64,000 bases of DNA from Vitrella brassicaformis CCMP3155. Taxonomy: Eukaryota > Protista > Chromerida. Location of the stretch: contig CDMY01000272.1 of assembly GCA_001179505.1 (NCBI GenBank), positions 76,613-140,612 on the forward strand, given 5' to 3'. This document shows positions 15,163 to 27,600 of the stretch, one piece after another. Position 1 is the first letter of the stretch; each line of letters starts with the position of its first letter. The notes under the pieces were generated by a model, which saw only the letters and a program-made list of their open reading frames with translations, ran no database searches and had not been told where the DNA came from. Made by a program: the position numbers and the translations under genes.

Positions 15163-18100
15163 TCAGTTGTATGCCGCCCCGCCCCCCTCAGGCATGTTCT
15201 CTATCGGCGGCACCACCCGTGCCCTCTTCCCCCCCTCGCCCCCTAACGCCTCACTCAACATCTGGCCCGTCTCGCCCATCCCCTCTACCTTGCCCTCCTC
15301 CTCTGCCACTGCTGGCGGCATCTGCGTCGCATCGAGCTCGTCGGCCATCAGGGGCTGCTGCTGCTGCTGCTGTTGCTGCTGCTGGCCGGCCTCCTCTGCG
15401 CCCTGGTCGACCTTGGCTGTCACCTCCACGGCTACGGCGTCCTTGTCTGGGATCTGGCCGTCGTACGGCGGCATCGTCATGGGGATGTCGAAGCACCCGT
15501 ACGTCAGCAGGCGATACTCATCCGACTACAGGCACGCACCACACACACACACGCATTCATCCAAGGGGAAAAGGATAAAAGAGAGAGGGGGAGAATGCAG
15601 GGGACCTACCTTGATGTAGACGGCGCTGGCGATTGCGAATGTGGCTAGGAATGCGGGCCAGTCGAGGTTGGGTTTGGGTCGTGCTGTGCGGCGGCCTGAC
15701 GGCTCCTGCTTCTGCAGTGCTGCGGCCGTCCAGCTGCCGCGGGACGTCGAGAGGTCGGGCGGCGGGGGAGGCGGGTTGAGGGAGAAGTGCTCACAGATCG
15801 ACTTGAAATCCTCACGCACCTGCACACACAACACGACCCACACACATGACATGACATGACATGACATGACATGAGGGAGGGAGGGAATGGCGGGCGTGGC
15901 GTGACCGCTCACCTTCTCAATGGGCACGTGTGCGAGTACGAAGGCCGGGTGGGCGGCGAAGTTCATCTTGCCCAGCAGATCCTCTAGCGTGATGGCCACA
16001 TTGGCCCCCTCACCACCACCACCCCCCTCCCCGCCCCCCTGCTGCTCGTTGCTATCAGCCCATCCCTCAGCACTTGGTGCCGGCGACCCGGTGGCCGCCT
16101 GCCAGGCCTTCTGCGTCCACTCCATGCGACGGGTGCTCATCCCGCCCTGAATGAGACACGCATGTGGTATGGGTGTGTGGGGGAGGAGGGAGGGGGAGGC
16201 TGGTGCATGGTATGTACCTGGAGCATGTCGAAGAAGGGTCCGTAGTGGAAGTGCCCGTCCATGTCAGCGTCGAAGGCCGAGAAGATGATGTCTCGCTCCA
16301 CCGGCGTCAGGCCCAAACTCATCACGCGACACAGACGATGCCAATCCGACTTGGTCAGCACCTACGGACACACACACACACACACACTTACGGCCCGTGC
16401 ACCGATCCTTCCTCGCCCCGCACTTGAGCGTACCTGTTTGCCGAATCCGTCGTACTTGTCTACAGCAGCGAGTAGGTTCTTCCACGGCTGCAGCAGCCGC
16501 GTCTGCGCCAGTCGGCCCCGCAGCCGACGGCAGATGAGCTCCAGGTTGTTGGAGAACACGTCACCAAACGCGAAGGTCAGGAACGACTTGGTCTGCACCC
16601 ATCCCATGCAGCACATCCATCCATCCATCCACTTGTTGGCCCGCCCCTTCCCCCAGCTCACAGTGGGCGACTGGCGTGCGTCAGGTGCTCCCTCTAGGAC
16701 GGGCAGGCGCAGGAATCGGCCGTATGAGCGTGGCGAGGGCGGGACGTCGATGTTGCGCGGCTGTGGGCCGGGGTGGTACGGCGGCTGGGGGTAGTCTTTG
16801 GGCAGCGTCTTGCCGGTGGGCGGGGTGGTGTCATAGAGGAAGGGGTGCGGCTTGGCGTAGTACTGGTTGTCATCCTTGAACAGCTGCCGGTCGTAGATGT
16901 GCTCCTCGGCTGCACACACAAAGAGAGACCAGCAATGGTCATCCTGCTTATGTGTGTGCGTGTGTGGATGGTTGTTGGTTTGGGTCGTACGCTTGCGTGG
17001 CGGGTTTGGCGGCTCGCGTGCTGTGGGTGGTCTGAGTGCATCGTCCTCCTCCTCCTTGGCCGCCTCAGCTAGGTCCAGGTCAGGATCTACCAGCCCCCAA
17101 CAACGGCTAACCATCGCTGAACCACAGACCACAAGCCACACAACACACAACACACACATGGGTTGGTTGTCGGTTCGTGTGTGTGTTGTGTGTCGTGTGT
17201 GTGTGCGGCAAAGGTTACTGTTGAAGTATGCATCATTCTGGTCGTCGACGAGTGCACTGACGACCGAGTAGTACTGGATCCAATCGGCCCCGGTCACCAT
17301 CACGTCGGCATCGTCCACACCACACACGCGATCGCCGCCGTGCTGACACACAGAGGGAGAGACAGGGGGAGGAGGAGGAGGAATGCATGTGTGTGTATGT
17401 GTGTGTGTCGGCGGGCACTCACCACGGCGGCAATGAATTTGGTGATTGATGTCTCGAACTCCTTGGCGATGAGCTCCGCCTCCGCCCGGCCCTGATCGAC
17501 CAGCGGATGGGCGCCGGCCTGCAACACACAGACACACACACATCCATCCATCCATCCAGCCAGCCACAGACATACAAGAGCTCTCTCCACTAGACGAGAG
17601 GCAACCAACGGACCTGGAAGTTGTGTTTGATGACGCTGAGTGGTATCTGTCCGCCGGCCCTGCCCCCCATCTCGTCCCGGTCGAGGGCGTGGAAGGCGCA
17701 CTCGACCATCACACGGCGAGCCGGCTTGATCGGACCCCACAGAACGGCCAACAGCCTAAGGAAATGACAGACAGACACGTGTCGCATGGACGGATGTGTG
17801 TGTATGTGTGTGGATGTGTGTGTGAGGGTCGGTGGTTTACTTGGTGACGGGTACGAGGGCGATGGGTTTGCCAGCGACTGTGTGTGTGTGTTTGGCGATG
17901 GACGTGTCGGCGAAGAGGGCGGCCTCCTCGGAGGGGCTCGCGTGGAGACCACACTGGACACACGCACGACGAAACTCTCCCATGTCTGAACCAAACACAC
18001 AGACACAGATACAGATACAGATACAAGGAAAGGAATGATCGGCCCTCTATGTGTGTGTGTGTGTGTTACCGATGTGGTCGTCATGGTCATCATCGGCCTC

Positions 18101-21043
18101 TATGAACGCCTGCACCACTTCCACCGCCGCCAACAAACCCCGACTTGCTGGACAACACACAGAGACAGAGGGAGAGAGACACACACGTCGTTCAACTGGT
18201 TACGTATGAGTAGCTGTGCCCCCATCTGTTTTGCCTACCTATGTTAGCTCTGATGCGCTGGAACGTCTCGGCCAGGTCGATGGCCGACGTGGGCGCACGG
18301 TACTCAACTGACGGACACACACATCGACATGAGAGCAGATGGCTCTGCAAGGATCACGCCCCCCATCGCCCACCCACCCACCGGTCTCATGCATTGTGTC
18401 CTGGTGCCAGTGGTGCAGATCGACACGCTGCCGAGCCTGCGTGCCCGCAGCAGGACCTAACCACACACAGTGAGTCGGTGCAATGCATTGGTGTGTTCCG
18501 CGGCCAATCCCATTGATTGACCTCACTCACCGGCAGCCGGGTCGACTTTGAGTGCGCTGTCGAAGGCGATGGCCGGCTTGTCGAGGTCCCACACACGCGT
18601 CACCAACTCTATCATATCACCGTGCCTGACACACACACACACACACAGATCCATAATGAGACACAGGGTGTGTGTGTGTGGGTGGGTGTGTGGGTGTTAC
18701 TTGTAGTAGTATCCGGCGATGAATTCGTTGTAGGCGATGAACTCCTCCCATGTCACCGTCTTGTTGACGTTGCGAGCGGCCGAACCGGTGCCACGCTGAA
18801 CACATACACACAGAGACCATGATATCACGGCAATCGATGGGTGTGCAATCGTCTTACTCGGTAGTTGAGCACGCCCTGCAGCGACTCCACTGCAAACGTC
18901 ACACACACACACGCATATTGTGTATGTGGGCTTATTGGGTCTCTCCGTATTGTATTGTGTGTATGGCTGTGTACCGAAGTCCTTGAGGGCCCTCTGCTCC
19001 ACACCCTCCTGGCGATTCGCTGCCACCTGACCCCACACACACAACACACAACACACAACACACAACACACGAAATGGCATCTTTCCCTGCCAGGTATGTG
19101 CGTGTCGGTATGGCTATGTCAGGCCACCTGTGGGTGTCTGGCGGCATTGTACAGTCGTATGATGTCGTCCATCGGCACAACCTTCTCGCCCTCAACCATC
19201 TCCTGAGGCACACACACACACACACAGACAACACAACCAAGAACACCACTTCTGCGAATCCGTGTGGCTGNNNNNNNNNNNNNNNNNNNNNNNNNNNNNN
19301 NNNNNNNNNNNNNNNNNNNNNNNNNNNNNNNNNNNNNNNNNNNNNNNNNNNNNNNNNNNNNNNNNNNNNNNNNNNNNNNNNNNNNNNNNNNNNNNNNNNN
19401 NNNNNNNNNNNNNNNNNNNNNNNNNNNNNNNNNNNNNNNNNNNNNNNNNNNNNNNNNNNNNNNNNNNNNNNNNNNNNNNNNNNNNNNNNNNNNNNNNNNN
19501 NNNNNNNNNNNNNNNNNNNNNNNNNNNNNNNNNNNNNNNNNNNNNNNNNNNNNNNNNNNNNNNNNNNNNNGGGGGGGGGGGGGGGGGGGGGGCAAGGCGG
19601 TTTTCCCTACAGTGAGGCGACGGAAGGCCTCGCGCACCACATCCCACACGGCCTTGCTCAGAGCAGCCTGCAGCCAACCGATCCATCCATCCATCCATCC
19701 GTATGCGTGTGCACGCCCTCTGCCTGGCCCCCGGCCATCCTCCCAGCCACCCACCTTGAGCTCGGCGATGAGCAGGTCGTATGCGAAGGAGCCGCTGTGA
19801 TGCGGGGCGCGGAAACGAGTGAACAGCTGCACATACAGAACCCACACACACGTCCGTCCTGCCTGTGTATGTGTCTGATATGGTGTAGTTGTGTGCCAGT
19901 TTGGTGTCATCTGAGTCGATTTCGAGCCGTGCGACGGTGCCGCGGCGCAGGACCACCATCAGGTCTTGCAGCGATATCATGCGGCTATCTGAACGACCCA
20001 TACACCCACAGCAACGTACACACACACGCACACACACACTCCCTCCCCCCTCCCCCCTCCCACCCCCAGGCCCTGGGTGGGTGTGTGTGTTCTCACTTGC
20101 TACGTCATGGTCTGTGAACTCCAGGGCGAAACGCACCAACGCATACGGATCCTGAGGGACAGGACAGGAAACCGCACACAAGGATGCAGACACCCTTTCC
20201 TGTGTGTCATGTACCGCCCGTACCTACCGTATCGGCTATGTAGTCCTTCATCCTCTGCACCAGCTGGTCTGCCGCAGGGATGGAGGCCGTGTCCAGCTTG
20301 GCCTCCCCCACAGATGGGCCACCCGGCCTGCAAACAACGACACACGCAAGGACGCATCCTCTCAGGTCAGGTGTGTGCGTCGTGCAAGATATGTCGCATC
20401 CTCTCCCCACCACCCCACCCACCCCTGCAGTGTGGCGATCTTCCCCGTCTGCGCCAACTCGTCGCTGCCGCGGACCTTCCCACTGCAACCATGGAACCAA
20501 CACGTACACCGACAAAGGAGTGCGTGGTCTGGTGATGCATCCGATGTGCGCGGGCAGTGCCTACTGTACCTGCAGAATGCGACAGCGAAGTCGCGGTACG
20601 GCATGGCAGCGCTGACATCGCCCCCGGCATACCGACTGAAGATCTGCTGCATCACCTGCACAGACAGATGGCCATGGAACAAACCAAACCGCATAACATA
20701 CCAGGCCTTCCCTGCGCCATCTCTCCCCTCTCCTCTCCTCTCCTCTCCTCTCCTCTCACACACATGGTCTGGCAGATGTCCAGCGTACGGCTCCAGGCTC
20801 TTCTTGAACCTCGCGAAGTCGCACCGGCCAGTGTCCCCAAGATCATGGTACCTGGGGGCGATTGGAAGCCACATGAAGCTCATTTCCATCCATCTCCGTC
20901 CAGATCTCTCCGTTTCCCCGTGCCCTCGTCACCCACTTGAACAGTTTGCCGACGAATGCCGCGGGAGCGGCGGGGTTGGCCGCCCGCTGCACCAGTCGGC
21001 TGAGCAGCTCCTCCTCAACACGATTTAGGTCCTTCGCGTCCAT
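15163..21043 (-). CDS. Calcyphosin-like multi-EF-hand protein with at least two calcyphosin modules; more than 20 exons
   Basis: Module 1: VREAFRRLT|EMVEGEKVVPMDDIIRLYNAARHP...VTWEEFIAY. Module 2: LWGPIKPARRVMVECAFHALD..HNFQ|AGAHPLV...WIQYYSVVSALVDD..DAYF..MVSRCWGL. Further EF-hand-like segments are DLGDTGRCDFARF and FDADMDGHFHYGPF. Confidence 0.75.
19271..19570. other. Assembly gap (300 N) within a calcyphosin-like gene intron
   Basis: N run followed by a G-tract; the flanking exons join as AFRRLT|EMVEGEK. Confidence 0.99.
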
Positions 21044-21157
21044 TCTACGCCACGAGCCGGAGCCATGTAAATTTGTTTGGCGTTTCATTCTGACCCTGGC
21101 CGAATCGCGAACGATGAGATTTGTTTGAAGCGCTTTTTCTCGGGATCATCAAACATC

Positions 21158-24100
21158 ATGCTGCACACGTTTTCATACCAGAGGCCTCCGCCACCCGCCC
21201 CCGTACCCGAATGGCCGCAGGTGAGAATAACACACACAGATCTCATGATGGCGGTGGCACACGTGGAGGATGCAACCATCTCTCTCTCTCCTTTGCCTGG
21301 ATCTCTCTCTTTTCCGTTCATTTCAGCGTCAGATCGGCCTCTCGTCCGGTAGCCATCCCACGCCGCCGCCCAATGCGCCGCAGCAGACGTCATCCACCGG
21401 CCAGATCCCAGATCCCACCGGTCAGCAGGGAGCCGGAGGCGGTCCCTTCCACCCCCGCATGCCCAACACGCACTCGGCGCTCTTCGGGCTCCGCCCTCCA
21501 CGCCCACCAATGCCCGAGGGCGTGCGCCCACCCGTACCTGCGGCTCATGGCGGTGGTATGCAGACCTTCGCGAATTCGCAGTCGTGGCGTCCGCCGCGTC
21601 CTGTGATGGTCCCTCCGCCCGCATCGCATCGCATGGCGCCGCTTAGCGCCACCAAACTCGTCCCCCCGCCGGCAGTGCCCAACGCTCCACGCGTCGCATC
21701 CATCCCGCAGACCTTGTCCATGCTGCCGGGGGTGTTCCGACCACCCCCTGCTGCTGCTGGTGGGGTAGTTGGTCCTTTTGGCGTACCGGGCCGCCCTGGT
21801 GGCCCAGGAGGACGGTTCACGCCAATGCCTATCCAGGCAGGGGGAGGGGGAGGGGTGACGGCCACTGGCGGCGGCATGACGGGTCAGGGAAAGGTGGGAG
21901 GTGAGGTAGTGAACGAGGTAGCCCGCTCGACGTCCGATCCGAACAAGGGCCCCCAGGGTCCGCAGGGTCAGCAGGGGGTCGGGGCGGTGCAGAGGGAGGG
22001 AGAGGGTGTGGTGGGCGGGAGAGAGGAGGGGATCTGTAGCGGTGTGGCCGGTGGGGTAGTGGGTCCGGCTGCTGGTGGTGGTGGTGTTGGGGGTATGGTG
22101 AGCACTTCGGTGCAGGAGGGGCGGCGACCCTTCTTCTACCCCACCACAGCTAACCCCCTGATCACGCCTGCCATGATACAGGTACCTACATGCGCACATG
22201 GGCCGGGCACACGGGAACGCATCACACACAGACACGTCCATCTGCATGGATCTGGGTGTGTTGGGTGTGTTGGGTGTGTTGTTGGTTCAGGCCCCTCTTC
22301 TCAAGTCGCATGCGTCACGTCCAGTGACCTCTCTGTCCCTCCAAGGGCAGCAGCTCACCACCGCCACCACACAGCAGCAGCACCAGCAGCAGCAGCAGCA
22401 GCCGCAGCAGCCACCCCCACAGCAGACACAAGACACTGCCACAGAGGACCACCATGCCACCACCGGCCCTCCCCACCTTCACCCGCACCCATGGCCGGAG
22501 GAGCCCGCCCTCTCCGTCCTGCCCAGTGACCCCCTGGCTAGAGAGGTGGAGAATCTCAAGACCGCCAAGTCGCTGGCAATGCAGAGCGAGAAATGGTCCA
22601 AACAACACCTACAGGGTGAGAAAGGACGCACACCACACGAGGGGGGCGAAAGAGGGAGGCCGGCCACTGGGGGCTCATATATCTGTTTCTGCTCTCTCTT
22701 GTTGTCTGTGTCTTGTGTGTGGGGGTTCAGAGCGCAACTCTCAGTTGTTCCGAGACCGTCAGGTGCACGGCCCCCGACGGACGGTAGCGGGCGGCGACGA
22801 TCCCCTCATCCATGGAGGGGGGGCAGGCGGTAAACACGAGACGGGCGGCACCTTCCTCACCTCGTTCACCCAACACCACCAGCAGCACCAGCAGCAGCCG
22901 CCCCCGTACACGGACGATTCGCCGTCCTTCCAGCCTCCACACCCACACCAGCAGCAGCAAGGCATGCAGCAGGGCATGGCCTTCGCCCCGCCCCCCGTCG
23001 TCCCTCCCAGCCATCCGTACCAGCAGCAGCACCACCAGCCGCTGCTCACCTACACCAACGCCGAGACGCAGTACGACCCACAGATGTACGGCACACTCGC
23101 CATGCAGGCGTCCACACACGCACCCCCACTCATCGAGAATAACTTCCCCGCACACGTGCCGGCCGGCTACCCATACGAGCAGCCCGTGCACGCGCCTCAG
23201 TACGAGCAGCAGATGGGCGAAGATGGAGAGATGGATGGAGGAGATGGGGCGGGAGGGGGCGGGGAGGGGCATGTGGTCAATGGCTTCGGCGTCGTAGATA
23301 GTGGTGCTGGTGTTGGTGGTGCTGGTGAGGCGCTGGCCAATGGGGTGCCGCTGGCACATGAGGGGGAGGGGATGGGCATGGGCATGATGGGCATGGGGGA
23401 GGGGGAGAGTGTGGAGCAGAACGCCCTGTTGGTCATGGAATTCTGCAAAGATAAGGTGGGTGGGTGACCGAACACATAAAAGGAGACCACACGGACACAC
23501 TGCTCACATCGCTTTTCCTTCCTCTCTTTGTGTGTGTGTGTGTTGGATCCATCCATCCATCAGTTGTCGCGTAGCGTAGTGCAGGAGTTGCGTCAGATGA
23601 AGCAGCCCCCCGCTGCCTCGCGCATCGTCCTTGAGACCCTCGCCACCCTCCTCTCGGTCCCCCTCACCGACACACGCCCCCTCGCCGTCCGCAAAGTGCT
23701 CGCCCTCCCCAACCTGGCCGACAAGCTCCACACCTTCGACCTCAACAGCGTCAAGAAAAAGGACTACCAGGCCATCCGCAGGAACCTGGCCAGCCACGAG
23801 TGGGACGAGACGGCACTCGAGACCACCAAGTTCGTCTTCCTGGCGCTCTGGGTGCGCGCCGTTGCCATGCTCCTGCAGACGCGCAAACACATGGCCAGCC
23901 CCCCCGTGCAGACCACTCTGACCTTCGAGCGGGCCATACGAGAGGCGACCATCGCCAAACACCCACTCGGCGAAAGTCGTGAGCAATGCCACCGTAGTCG
24001 TAGCAAGGAGACGGAGGGGAGGGGAGAGGGGGCGGGGCAGAGGGGGTCGTCAGTGCGGGGGGCGGAGGCCACAGTGACGAGTGGCGGTGGGAAGGTAGTG

Positions 24101-24629
24101 CTGAGTTTCGAGCCCGACCTTCGTGTGATGAGTGAGGATGAGAAGGGGGCGGTGATGGATTTGAAGATATCGCGCGAGGGAGTGGGCTCCATCCAGTTCC
24201 ACGGCATCACCGACTGCAGAGGAATCGACTTCGACGAGGTCAGCACAGTACACCTACCCCACCCACTCCATCACACAACGCACACACACACATCAATGCT
24301 CGTCTCATCTCTTTGTCTCTCTGTCTGTCTCTGTCTCTGTCTGTGTGTGTGGGCAGGTTGTTCGATTGGAGGTGGGTGAGGTGTTGGTGTACCCGAGCAA
24401 CAGCAGCGTGCGCAAGCCCGAGGTGGGGCACGGCCTCAACAGGCCGGCGACGGTGACCATGTACCAGTGCTGGCCGCCCCCCACGCAGCACGAGGGCACG
24501 CTGTCCGACACGGCCGCCATGGAGCGGTACCGCCGGAAGATCCAGCTCATGACGGAGCGCAAGGACGCCACCTTCATCGACTACTGCTGCCAGACAGGCG
24601 TGTGGAAATTCAGAGTCGAACACTTCTGA
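21158..24629 (+). CDS. Nup98-family autopeptidase (peptidase S59/Nucleoporin2) domain protein with P/G/Q-rich N-terminus and a dynein-stalk MTBD-like domain
   Basis: The C-terminus LKISREGVGSIQFHG...VVRLEVGEVLVYP...KPEVGHGLNRPATVTM...ATFIDYCCQTGVWKFRVEHF* is a clear S59 domain. The exon from 23564 reads LSRSVVQELRQMKQPP...KLHTFDLNSV...LALWVRAV. Confidence 0.85.
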
Positions 24630-27600
24630 TACATACGATGATAGATAGCACAACAGGTACATGGAGAGGTACACACAGACACGAGGGAGGGAGGGAGGGA
24701 GGTTATCATGTCTTTCCCTCTCTCTGTGTGTGTGTGGCAGATCTTACCGGTGTTTAATTAGGACACGGGACGGGAGGAGTGTAGCCTTTGCATGCCTGCC
24801 TGAGGGATGCGTGGATGGGTGGGCGGGCGTGTGTGTGTGTGTGTGTGTGGAGTGATGCGGTGTCTCCACGACTTCTAGTGCAGTGCATGATTTGTCGGAT
24901 GGCCGCTTTCTCGCACTTTTGCCCAGCGCATAGAAAGATAGCTTGACGGCTGGATGGATGGATGTGCACAGCGGTCTGTCCAAATCTCTCTCTGTGAAAG
25001 CCTTTCTTTTCTGCTGCCTGCGTGCCCGTCTGTTTGCGGCTCTCTCATCCGTGACGAGAGCCCAGACACACAGGCATTCGGACGGCGAAAGGACCGCATT
25101 CTAGAGCGAGTGAGCCCAGTAGCTATGAGGGGGCCTTTCTTGCGATGATTGTATGGAGCAGGGAAGAGAGGGTCTTTCCATCCAACCATTCATCCATCCA
25201 TCCCCTGCACACACCATCACACACAAGAGTGAGCGAGCGTGTATACGTGTGTGTGTGTTTGATGTGTGTGGTGGTGAGGTGTTTAAATGGACTGGGCGGC
25301 AGCCCCGCGCAAGTGCCCATCCGCCCGTCAGGGACCACTGGGCAGCCCTCACACACACACACACACACACACATCCACACCTTCAGCCAGCACCCCCAAC
25401 CAGACTGACTGACTGACTTGTATGCCGTCTCGGCTCGTCTACTCGTCTTTTCACACCCCAACGCTCACACGCTCACAGACAGGTGTCAGATCAGGTCAGA
25501 TCAGATCTCACACACTATTACTATAGGTTTTTGTCCGGGCCCTTCTCTCTTTCATGCGGGCAGGCTCTTCGATCTTCTGTGCAACTGTGAGAGAGGCCGG
25601 CCCATCCACTTCACGCTCCTGACGGGTTCCTTTCACAATTGTCACGACTCACTCGGCGTGTCGCTCTTTTTGCCGTCCCTCCCTGTCTCTATTTCCCTAC
25701 CTTTCTACCACCAACCGACCGACCGACCGACAAAACACACTGACTACACCCACCCATCACATGCACCCACCCCTCTCACACCCTACCTACCTATGGATCG
25801 ATGGATCGGCCCCGATGGATGTCTATCTACTCTCCATGATATTATGTCTGCCCGTGACGACCCGACCCACTCACTACAAAGGTAATAAGTAAGGTACTAG
25901 AGACGCACTGACGCGGTGTCGCCCGTCAGTACCCTGTGAACGTTGGCTGATATTGTGATGGTGGCCTGGCCTGCCTGTTCGACTGACTCGTCTGCACACA
26001 CACAGGGAGAGAGAGAAAGCTATACGTGTACGGGCATCAAAGAGAGAGAGGTGGTGGGATGGGTGTGTTCTCTTTCCTCTTCGGGTGAATCTCGACGAAT
26101 CGGTCTATTGTGCTCTATGCGACCGACACTCACATACACTCTATCTCACTAACTACGTCAGTACCTCTGGCCGATGCTACTCGCCGCTCGCCACACTGGC
26201 CCCCTACTCGTGATGGTGGACAATATTTGCCTGGATGATACTCTTTGTCTCTGTGAGGCTATGATTTTTCGCGCAACAACAAGCCTCGAGGAACCGAATG
26301 AGCTGCCCGGCGGTAGGCATCATCCATCTCGGTGGTGCCTGCCTGCCGCCGAACGTCTTTCTATATCCGATACTTCTTCCAGTGTGCGGGCACGTACATA
26401 CGACAGACAGACAGGAAAGATACTTACCTACCTACCTGCCTACTTCCTCGATGGTTTCTGAGAGGTCTCGGCGTCCACACACACGGAGGCTTTCCATTGG
26501 ATGTGACATGGTGAATGCAATGCTTCATGGCGCATGGCGACCATACGGTGTCGATATCATCCTTCATTCAGGTGTCGCCTGTGTCCCTCCCTCCCTCACT
26601 CCTGTTTTGAAGTGCATGTCTACCCCTCCCTCCCTCCCTCCGTCCCTCTGCATGCGACACATAATACTGCTGCGAAAGGAACCGATGTGTCTCGCCTGGT
26701 GTGTCTCTGACCGACCGACCCATCGATTGCCGTCCTCCTCCTACTATTACTTACTGTCTACGTGAGCTGATGTCAGGGGGGAGGGGGGAGAGAGAGGGAA
26801 CAAGTCCAAGGGCCACACACGAGAATACGCGAGCGTAGCGAGTAGGGGCCATTTCTCCCGACGTTTAATCCTCTCGGTCCTGTTTTCCCTCGTGCGCTAT
26901 CCCTCTTTCACACATCACACATCACACATCACACACACACACTCTATCAGAGTTTGGGGCTGGCTGCGTCCGTCCCTCACTCATCTGTCTGCATCATTCA
27001 CTCACCCACTGGTCATTCGATGGATGGGCCCTTTCCTTCCCTTCCCCTCCGATCCCTCCTGCGTGGCTCTTCGTTCCTACTTTCTTATACCTGCCTACCT
27101 ACCTTCTGTCGTCCGCACACTGTCTCTAAGACTGACGGTTCCTATGACCACTGCCGTCCGAGGGTGCTACCACTGGCCGACCGATATACCGATGATGGAT
27201 GGATGGATGGAAGGATGGACAGACAGACAGACAGCACTCACGGCGGCAGACGAGCTGAGGGCTTAGAACACCCTCGCTCAACCCGTGGGCACATCCATCC
27301 GATGGATGTGCCCACGGGTCGGGGAGACCCGACGGCGCACACACAACACGCCACACACACACTGCCACATTGGATGGGATGATGACATACATTTGATGAT
27401 ATGCGGAACGGTTTTCTTGGCGCAATGACTGCGGACTGACGCGACTGGCTTGTTGCTAATACTACCTACGCTGGCTGTGGATGTCGTGTGGTGTGTGGGG
27501 TGTGGTGGGGGCGGGGTGTTCAAAGGAAAGAGAGACCTTTTGACTGATATGTCTCTGTCTTCTTCCGAGTCCAGCGGCAGCCTCCTGAGTGCCCATCCGC

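Follow-up and report, generated by a model that had tools for sequence, protein, structure and literature searches.

The analysed window, a stretch of 64,000 nucleotides from the genome of Vitrella brassicaformis, contains between positions 21158 and 24629 of its plus strand a gene encoding a protein of 971 residues. It comprises six exons, all of which are joined by GT-AG introns with every frame open. Its features, with positions referring to the window, are the following:

21158..21220, + strand: exon 1, residues 1-21, with the proposed ATG at 21158
21327..22181, + strand: exon 2, residues 22-306, P/G/Q-rich and of low complexity
22291..22615, + strand: exon 3 (phase 1 at its end), residues 307-414; contains a Q-rich stretch and, from 22492, the beginning of a conserved coiled-coil-like segment of helical character
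22731..23455, + strand: exon 4, residues 415-656; remainder of the coiled-coil-like segment (up to 22762), then a spacer rich in Q/P/G/M and, from 23417, a CC1-like helix ahead of the MTBD
23564-24238, + strand: exon 5, with AG acceptor at 23562-23563; MTBD-like domain, linker and first part of the S59 domain
23564..23887, + strand: MTBD-like domain, H1-H6; residues 1-108 of exon 5, corresponding to protein residues 657-764
23888..24094, + strand: linker between the MTBD-like and S59 domains, residues 765-833, R/S/G/E-rich
24095..24238, + strand: first part of the S59 domain at the end of exon 5, PF04096 positions 12-52; aligns with relatives
24239..24356, + strand: intron splitting the S59 domain, 118 bp, GT...AG; PF04096 resumes from 52 to 57 across it
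24357..24629, + strand: exon 6, second part of the S59 domain with terminal ...RVEHF; TGA stop at 24627-24629
24657..24740, + strand: intron in the 3' UTR, past the stop codon; GT..AG joint 24653->24738 (cut +3) in contigs of runs X1 and X5

We infer the ATG at 21158 to be the start codon; a contig of run X5 begins at 21101. The splicing of the gene is reflected in contigs that we call RNA-like, a label that is based only on the presence of spliced contigs in runs X1 and X5. These confirm three of the coding introns and the one in the 3' UTR, with the GT..AG joint 21220|21327 and the joint 22615|22731 both found in contigs of X1 and X5, and the joint 22181|22291 equally present in RNA-like contigs. 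Exons 5 and 6 are also covered, in one case by a contig that reads through the TGA stop. The two joints that flank exon 5 (23455|23564 and 24238|24357) are absent among the read joints listed, with the region 24308-24360 being repeat-masked, and the spliced protein aligns without gaps to dinoflagellate proteins across both. In the surroundings of the gene, an assembly gap (19272-19570) is located 2 kb upstream, and the minus-strand open reading frames of the upstream region (16362-21088) match no Pfam family.

The two out of five coding-exon joints that were not seen in the reads and the proximity of the assembly gap could be taken to indicate that the fusion of the two domains is an artefact, resulting from a chimeric gene model, an error in the assembly or a pseudogene. 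We regard this explanation as close to refuted, since both domains reside within the open exon 5, so that no splicing is required to join them, since exons 5 and 6 are covered by RNA-like contigs with all frames open, and since the same architecture recurs in more than 100 independent transcripts and genomes.

The first of the two domains resembles the microtubule-binding domain (MTBD) at the tip of the dynein stalk. As described in an earlier sequence-only reading, which had recognized this resemblance, exon 5 starts at 23564 and reads LSRSVVQELRQMKQPPAASRIVLETLATLL...LALWVRAV. While this exon holds the bulk of the domain, our analysis places its beginning about 13 residues further upstream, in exon 4, and it thus spans residues ~644-764, with a homology to relatives that is free of gaps over the 23455|23564 junction. 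On its own, the Vitrella copy is divergent and shows no match to the Pfam MT family (PF12777) at E<=1, and in a search against the PDB its best matches are dynein MTBDs, but with a weak E-value of 0.009. In contrast, 43 of 64 relatives match PF12777 (best 2.9e-17), P0041 is above both Pfam cut-offs, and in a search of the ESM Atlas the same family is assigned to 83 of 100 matches. The relationship becomes evident in family profiles, where the alignment A1 finds 96 matches in the PDB, all of them dynein heavy chains, with DNAH6 as best (4.1e-26), and the alignment A3, which was restricted to S59-linked members, finds 83 matches, again dyneins only (best 1.3e-19), including the MTBD of cytoplasmic dynein-1 (6rzb, 2.1e-17).

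The same relationship is found at the level of structure. A prediction of exon 5 by AlphaFold without alignment reached a pLDDT of 38.7, and we have instead used an alignment-based model of the MTBD-like domain, which contains seven helices and was obtained with a pLDDT of 85.3 and a pTM of 0.77. In a Foldseek search of the PDB with this model, the top 27 matches are all dynein MTBDs, with TM scores that reach 0.70-0.75 in the best of them and fall to no less than 0.60, and with rmsds of 2.4-2.8 Å over 113-126 columns at 13-22% identity for the best matches, whereas the first non-dynein match scores 0.21 and other folds do not exceed 0.3. The resemblance noted from the sequence is thus upheld by family profile and structure far beyond chance, and the domain is a homologue of the six-helix MTBD of dynein heavy chains, with the inner-arm DNAH6 type as best match, a hint that it may derive from such a dynein. 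Both share the signature L.EL+....PP..V..V.EA...LL...W...+..L....F...L...D...V......L......F.EE.......L..W.RA.

A pronounced difference to dynein concerns the parts that surround the domain. The antiparallel CC1/CC2 stalk is absent in the AlphaFold model, which shows only a short CC1-like helix ahead of H1, and the region past H6 is a coil of low pLDDT, with a GGP turn that is conserved in most relatives. Neither the exons of the Vitrella gene nor the full-length relatives contain AAA or dynein Pfam domains, and there is no motor and no tail. The family thus lacks the CC2 return helix, the antiparallel stalk, the AAA+ ring and the tail of dynein, and its members remain below 1,300 residues, compared to more than 4,000 in dynein. 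MTBD modules outside dynein heavy chains are also found, equally stalk-less, in the proteins P0058 and P0105 from marine metatranscriptomes (PF12777 at 2.8e-50 and 3e-31). These differ by containing two or three MTBDs in tandem, which are much nearer to those of dynein, and by the absence of an S59 domain.

The second domain is the autopeptidase (S59) domain of Nup98, whose assignment in the sequence-only reading is borne out by PF04096 and by the family profile. The proposal that the MTBD-like domain runs into S59 within one open exon holds for the first third of the latter, which is encoded in exon 5 (residues 185-225 of the exon, corresponding to profile positions 12-52, E 2.3e-4), but an intron interrupts the domain, and the remainder is found in exon 6 (positions 57-143, E 1.1e-21, 77.9 bits vs a cut-off of 28.4). 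Relatives align without gaps across this intron. The S59 profile of the family matches the structures of Nup98, Nup145N and Nup116 in a range of 1e-30 to 1e-15, with values of 1.1e-30 for the Nup98 autoproteolytic domain, 3e-23 for Nup145N and 4e-18 for Nup116. The His-Phe pair that forms P2-P1 of the autocleavage site is present in the Vitrella protein (...RVEHF), and in the profile alignment the HF end of the family coincides with that of cleaved Nup98 chains. The Ser/Thr nucleophile and the downstream Nup96 part are absent, with the TGA directly following Phe, and the domain is thus unable to cleave itself because nothing follows this residue.

The fold and sequence family of the S59 domain and the end of the chain at the HF of the cleaved form are thus shared with Nup98, Nup145N, Nup116 and Nup100; yeast Nup116 and Nup100 also lack an attached Nup96-like part. 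In contrast to these proteins, the Vitrella protein contains no GLFG/FG repeat domain and no residue past the Phe, and carries a dynein MTBD upstream instead. The first of these properties is reflected in the N-terminal ~650 residues, which are P/Q/G-rich and nearly devoid of FG motifs, with 3 FG and 0 GLFG in the whole protein of 971 residues. Within this part, a conserved motif in exon 2, RRPFFYPTTANPL (22119-22166), is common to 20 of 109 full-length relatives, and the coiled-coil-like segment, whose residues 374-425 align to relatives with E-values of 5e-5 to 5e-3, begins in exon 3, whose AKSLA motif is present in 27 of the 109. Both the short motif and the segment were found in Vitrella and in one clade of dinoflagellates. 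The linker between the two folded domains (residues 765-833) is variable and gapped among relatives, and the pLDDT of the AlphaFold model drops past model residue 108. The genome of Vitrella also encodes a canonical GLFG-containing Nup98-Nup96 gene (on contig C748), which reads ...VEHF|TKY... and continues into the downstream Nup96 part, whose first residues are TKYDML, and a 288-residue piece of which contains 12 FG and 8 GLFG. In a search of the same genome with the MTBD-like part, no paralogue was found and other matches were at E>1. As a separate observation, introns divide the tubulin genes of Vitrella into short exons.

The combination of MTBD and S59 defines a family of 117 cluster representatives of 186-1,272 residues, nearly all of which show the same architecture. 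Its conserved order consists of a disordered, FG-poor N-terminus (with a median FG density in the family of 0.12 per 100 residues), a stalk-less MTBD homologue and a C-terminal S59 domain that stops at HF. The C-terminal end is complete in 106 relatives, and the final residues are HF in 83 of the 117, RF in 16 and QF in 5. All named members are from dinoflagellates, which contain several paralogues compared to a single copy in the chromerid Vitrella, whose own protein was not among the matches of either database search. The relatives carry database labels such as 'Peptidase S59 domain-containing protein', 'NUP98B' or even 'Dynein axonemal heavy chain 6'. The claim that no protein of this architecture has been described holds for the publications covered, as our search of the literature on MTBD-like domains outside dynein, on dinoflagellate Nup98 and on nucleoporins in relation to the extranuclear spindle found nothing on the family, but sequence databases hold more than 100 such entries. 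A candidate apicomplexan member, TGGT1_220400, which is listed as 'nucleoporin autopeptidase' in Table 1 of PMC10923651, was rejected; this label is probably an error of the table, and two papers assign the gene to ADF.

The fusion of an MTBD to the Nup98 domain suggests that nuclear pores could be linked directly to microtubules, and in our best reading, to which we assign a probability of about one half, the protein is a static, direct and motor-free tether between the two. The S59 domain would from the outset take the form of the cleaved C-terminal domain of Nup98, because self-cleavage is impossible, and it would dock at the usual sites of Nup98 at the pore, the N-terminus of Nup96 and Nup88/Nup82, where it would adjoin or compete with the canonical GLFG Nup98. 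The basic MTBD would in turn attach to the microtubule lattice independently of a motor and with an affinity that would not be gated by ATP, since the CC1/CC2 stalk is absent, and two molecules may associate via the coiled-coil-like segment, thereby providing two microtubule-binding heads. Pores are also connected to microtubules in animals and fungi, where the tethers RanBP2-BICD2-dynein and Nup133-CENP-F-NudE/L-dynein recruit the whole motor via adaptors. In contrast, the protein described here contains only the microtubule-binding tip of the motor, fused to a pore-docking domain, and it is therefore not expected to generate force.

The MTBD of dynein contacts tubulin at the intradimer interface, with K3299 and R3337 as known contact residues, and the registry of the stalk gates its affinity, with the high affinity of isolated MTBDs depending on this registry (PMC6629372). 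Since the stalk is absent, the affinity of the MTBD-like domain is not predictable. The domain of Vitrella carries a net charge of +7 at a pI of 10.3, and the corresponding medians of the family are +5 and 9.3, with conserved basic residues located in H2, H3, H4 and H6. It is conceivable, although in our view rather unlikely, that the protein is a pore component whose dynein-derived domain has lost its binding to microtubules and is re-used as a module for the interaction with another protein, such as soluble tubulin, another nucleoporin or a cargo. Such a loss would agree with the divergence of the Vitrella copy and its missing match to Pfam MT, with the disappearance of the regulatory stalk and with the fact that the conserved residues include many hydrophobics of the core (W96, L9, V22 and L104) that folding alone would preserve. 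However, the entire MTBD signature is kept in more than 100 sequences, and so are basic residues at the surface of H3 and H6, with position K54 being basic in 92% and R98 in 77%, and a net positive charge, as would be expected for a domain that still binds an acidic partner, for instance the tubulin surface.

A second question concerns the location of the protein. In vertebrates, as described by Cross and Powers (2011, PMC3046062), the C-terminus of Nup98 itself associates with microtubules on the spindle, together with MCAK and after disassembly of the pores, and Nup98-type C-termini would be linked to microtubules in both systems. In contrast to the vertebrate protein, the family described here contains a dedicated dynein-derived MTBD in a separate, FG-less paralogue. 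The vertebrate example of a mitotic association away from pores leaves some room for a microtubule-associated protein whose S59 domain docks elsewhere, be it at a microtubule-organising centre, the flagellar base or the spindle, or acts on regulators of microtubules, as has been suggested for MCAK and the C-terminus of vertebrate Nup98. The docking surface may have changed, as the S59 domains of the family are well apart from canonical Nup98, with E-values of 1e-42 or better among themselves vs 5e-14 for the next match. We nevertheless consider an off-pore location to be improbable, since S59 shows the strongest conservation within the family (a mean column identity of 50%), since it still terminates exactly at the HF of the form that docks at the pore and since docking at the pore is the sole known role of this fold.

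With respect to a tether at the pore, the distribution of the family in dinoflagellates and a chromerid fits a link to closed mitosis, as a correlation alone. Dinoflagellate chromosomes are attached to the nuclear envelope while the spindle is extranuclear and passes through tunnels, and the attachment plaques form beside nuclear pores, with their microtubule-binding component not identified (PMC3603444). Our proposal that the family constitutes this missing microtubule-binding face of spindle attachment sites embedded in the envelope is an improbable one. If true, a pore-docked MTBD without motor would either be that component of the plaque or tie pores and envelope to the microtubules of the spindle or the tunnels.

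To our knowledge, and in the literature that we searched, descriptions of the dynein MTBD have so far been confined to its place at the end of the dynein stalk. In the family described here it stands alone, in a stalk-less form that is fused to the pore-anchoring domain of Nup98 and conserved across dinoflagellates and a chromerid. The family also offers a natural stalk-less MTBD for asking how far the microtubule affinity of dynein depends on the stalk. If the proposed mechanism is true, it would constitute a direct, motor-free link between pores and microtubules in lineages where mitosis proceeds within a closed envelope, and for the attachment of the dinoflagellate spindle to chromosomes, which takes place through the envelope and beside the pores, the family would provide a concrete candidate component.

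Vitrella brassicaformis is a photosynthetic, free-living relative of the apicomplexans. In our model of the window gene, six exons with GT-AG borders form a single continuous frame of 971 codons on the + strand.

Exons of the window gene (gene model, window positions)
21158-21220, + strand, exon 1
21327-22181, + strand, exon 2
22291-22615, + strand, exon 3
22731-23455, + strand, exon 4
23564-24238, + strand, exon 5
24357-24629, + strand, exon 6

Two of four sequencing runs were taken as RNA-like because spliced contigs are present in them, and in both, introns 1-3 match the model exactly. Spliced contigs from two runs also define an 84-bp GT-AG intron in the 3' UTR (24657-24740, 27 bases past the stop codon), and a contig with this intron spliced reads across the stop codon. 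The joints flanking exon 5 are absent among the read joints listed for these runs, partly because 24308-24360 is masked as a repeat. Both joints are nevertheless supported, since the Pfam S59 profile continues across the exon 5/exon 6 border (exon 5 stops at profile position 52 and exon 6 resumes at 57) and since the spliced protein aligns without gaps to dinoflagellate proteins at both exon 5 junctions. Moreover, exon 5 holds, in one open exon, both the domain resembling the dynein microtubule-binding domain (MTBD) and the first third of the Nup98 S59 domain, so that splicing is unnecessary for the fusion; the sequence-only reading had let this exon run directly into the S59 domain, which is however completed in exon 6. 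That the fusion is an artefact is nearly excluded. Upstream, an assembly gap (N run, 19272-19570), followed by a G run at 19571-19593, sits inside an apparent multi-exon minus-strand gene that starts at ~21043, head to head with the window gene, and whose ORFs are without Pfam match.

On its own, the MTBD-like sequence finds dynein MTBDs as best but weak matches in the PDB (E 0.009-0.09), and a Pfam search gives no match to PF12777, the Pfam family of this domain, which is carried by 83 of its 100 nearest clusters in language-model features. The profile of A1, a 64-sequence alignment of this part of the family with the window copy first, matches 96 distinct PDB sequences, all of them dynein heavy chains, with axonemal DNAH6 as the best (4.1e-26) and cytoplasmic dynein-1 MTBD structures at 1e-19 to 1e-18. 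The PF12777 match, missing in the window copy, is found individually in 43 of the 64 members (best 2.9e-17). A control profile from 40 S59-linked members only, without two tandem-MTBD proteins that are far closer to dynein, retrieves 83 sequences, all of them dyneins (DNAH6 1.3e-19, 6rzb 2.1e-17). Judged by sequence, the middle domain is a homologue of the dynein MTBD, with the relatives settling what the window copy shows weakly.

This assignment, proposed in the sequence-only reading, is also borne out by the predicted structure. An AlphaFold2 model of 123 window residues, with A1 as alignment (pLDDT 85.3, pTM 0.77), displays a short leading helix followed by six helices and a disordered tail. 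In a Foldseek search of the PDB, the first 27 matches are all dynein MTBDs (TM 0.60-0.75), the best with TM 0.70-0.75 and an rmsd of 2.4-2.8 Å over 113-126 columns, and the first non-dynein match follows at TM 0.21; that the E-values are modest (5e-3) is in line with the small size of the domain. In contrast to dynein, the helix corresponding to the first stalk helix CC1 is short (~25 residues, beginning in exon 4), the second stalk helix CC2 is absent, with a conserved GGP turn after helix H6 in most relatives, and there is no AAA+ motor. The domain is basic (net charge +7, pI 10.3; family medians +5 and 9.3), with conserved basic positions of the family in H2, H3, H4 and H6.

The identification of the C-terminus as a Nup98 autopeptidase domain was correct: exon 6 matches PF04096 (Nup98-96 autopeptidase S59) with an E-value of 1.1e-21, the preceding strands being supplied by exon 5, and A2, a profile built from the C-terminal domains of the family, matches solved structures of Nup98 autoproteolytic domains (1.1e-30), Nup145N (3e-23) and Nup116 (4e-18). 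In this profile, the terminal His-Phe (HF) of the family is aligned with the terminal two residues of cleaved Nup98 chains. Since in the window gene a TGA directly follows the Phe codon, the nucleophile is absent and there is nothing to release; the domain is made in the form that Nup98 attains only after self-cutting. As the genome also contains a canonical Nup98-Nup96 gene (contig C748, 166000-175999, minus strand), we regard the window gene as a second, nearly FG-free Nup98 S59 paralogue in Vitrella. The canonical gene combines GGLFG repeats with an S59 domain, whose cleavage site separates FWVEHF from TKYDML before continuing into a Nup96-like part, whereas the window chain ends at HF and contains 3 FG in 971 residues, compared to 12 in a 288-residue piece of its counterpart.

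Searching 1.84 billion cluster representatives with exon 5 yielded 117 proteins at E<=1e-3, of which 23 reach E<=1e-10; almost every one has an MTBD-like stretch and an S59 start near the C-terminus. The end W.F.V..F is complete in 106 relatives (83 HF, 16 RF, 5 QF, 1 EF, 1 GF), and the complete members, with a median length of 671 residues, contain hardly any FG. In a word-based search, family matches end at ~1e-42, followed by canonical Nup98-96 at 5e-14 and 3e-5. The organism-named members are all dinoflagellates (Effrenium voratum, Polarella glacialis, Cladocopium goreaui, Symbiodinium necroappetens, Karlodinium veneficum, Gymnodinium catenatum, Yihiella yeosuensis), and the remainder stem from marine metatranscriptomes, on contigs of 2.5-4.5 kb, and from a small number of genomic contigs. 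Apicomplexans and ciliates, where the domain pair was also to be sought, and perkinsids do not appear among the organism-named matches, which are a minority. A quick tree contains at least three deep clades, which implies several paralogues in dinoflagellates, and places the window protein on a long branch. Two further N-terminal regions, neither of which matched a known domain or partner, are each common to Vitrella and one dinoflagellate clade, so that this kinship spans the whole protein: the motif RRPFFYPTTANPL (22119-22166; consensus RRP(TD)PFFYPTT.NPL; 20 of 109 full-length relatives) and a coiled-coil-like segment around TAKSLAMQ (22492-22762; AKSLA; 27 of 109).

P0017 (Effrenium voratum, 984 aa) carries two Pfam S59 stretches, one spanning residues 265-390 and the other C-terminal; either the duplication is real, or the gene model has joined two adjacent genes. 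P0156 and P0067 are intronless, lie on very long contigs (1.8 Mb and 0.32 Mb, ENA assemblies) and have RF rather than HF as their last two residues. Two or three dynein MTBD modules in tandem, with a short flanking coil, make up the metatranscriptome proteins P0058 (465 aa; PF12777, E 2.8e-50) and P0105 (386 aa; PF12777, E 3e-31), which lack the S59 end; their composition marks them as a second sort of non-dynein protein made from the dynein MTBD. TGGT1_220400, listed as 'Nucleoporin autopeptidase' among TgNup503 interactors (PMC10923651, Table 1), is given as ADF (actin-depolymerising factor) in two other papers, and the table probably carries a wrong identifier or name here. The claim that no such protein had been described agrees with our literature search, in which no paper on the MTBD-S59 family came up, nor any on a dynein MTBD in other proteins than dynein heavy chains, but does not hold for databases, which hold the 117 relatives under labels such as 'Peptidase S59 domain-containing protein', 'NUP98B' and once 'Dynein axonemal heavy chain 6'. 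Both parts are known and their combination is new.

Wherever it has been studied, the S59 fold docks proteins of the Nup98 type at the pore via the Nup96 N-terminus or Nup88/Nup82, and a copy ending at HF, equivalent to the docked, post-cleavage form, would provide anchoring by this predicted docking. That the domain instead docks elsewhere than at the pore is a main rival, in whose favour one report describes binding of the vertebrate Nup98 C-terminus to microtubules and MCAK in mitosis (PMC3046062). Dynein's own MTBD attaches to tubulin at the intradimer interface, with an affinity tuned by stalk registry (PMC6629372); without stalk or motor, the MTBD-like domain could bind microtubules statically only, and two such heads could be brought together by the coiled-coil-like segment upstream. 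In the other main rival, the domain derived from dynein would now serve a different partner. What the analysis shows is a conserved architecture of two domains, each with its homology and predicted fold; to the full mechanism of a pore-anchored microtubule tether we give about even odds, since the S59 domain ends in the docked form and an MTBD lacking stalk and motor could bind statically.

According to a review of unusual mitoses, dinoflagellate chromosomes attach to plaques that are embedded in the envelope, adjoin nuclear pores and look onto a spindle outside the nucleus; the molecular make-up of the plaques is unknown (PMC3603444). A fusion of a pore-docking domain with an MTBD that is expanded in dinoflagellates would be an obvious candidate for a component of these plaques.
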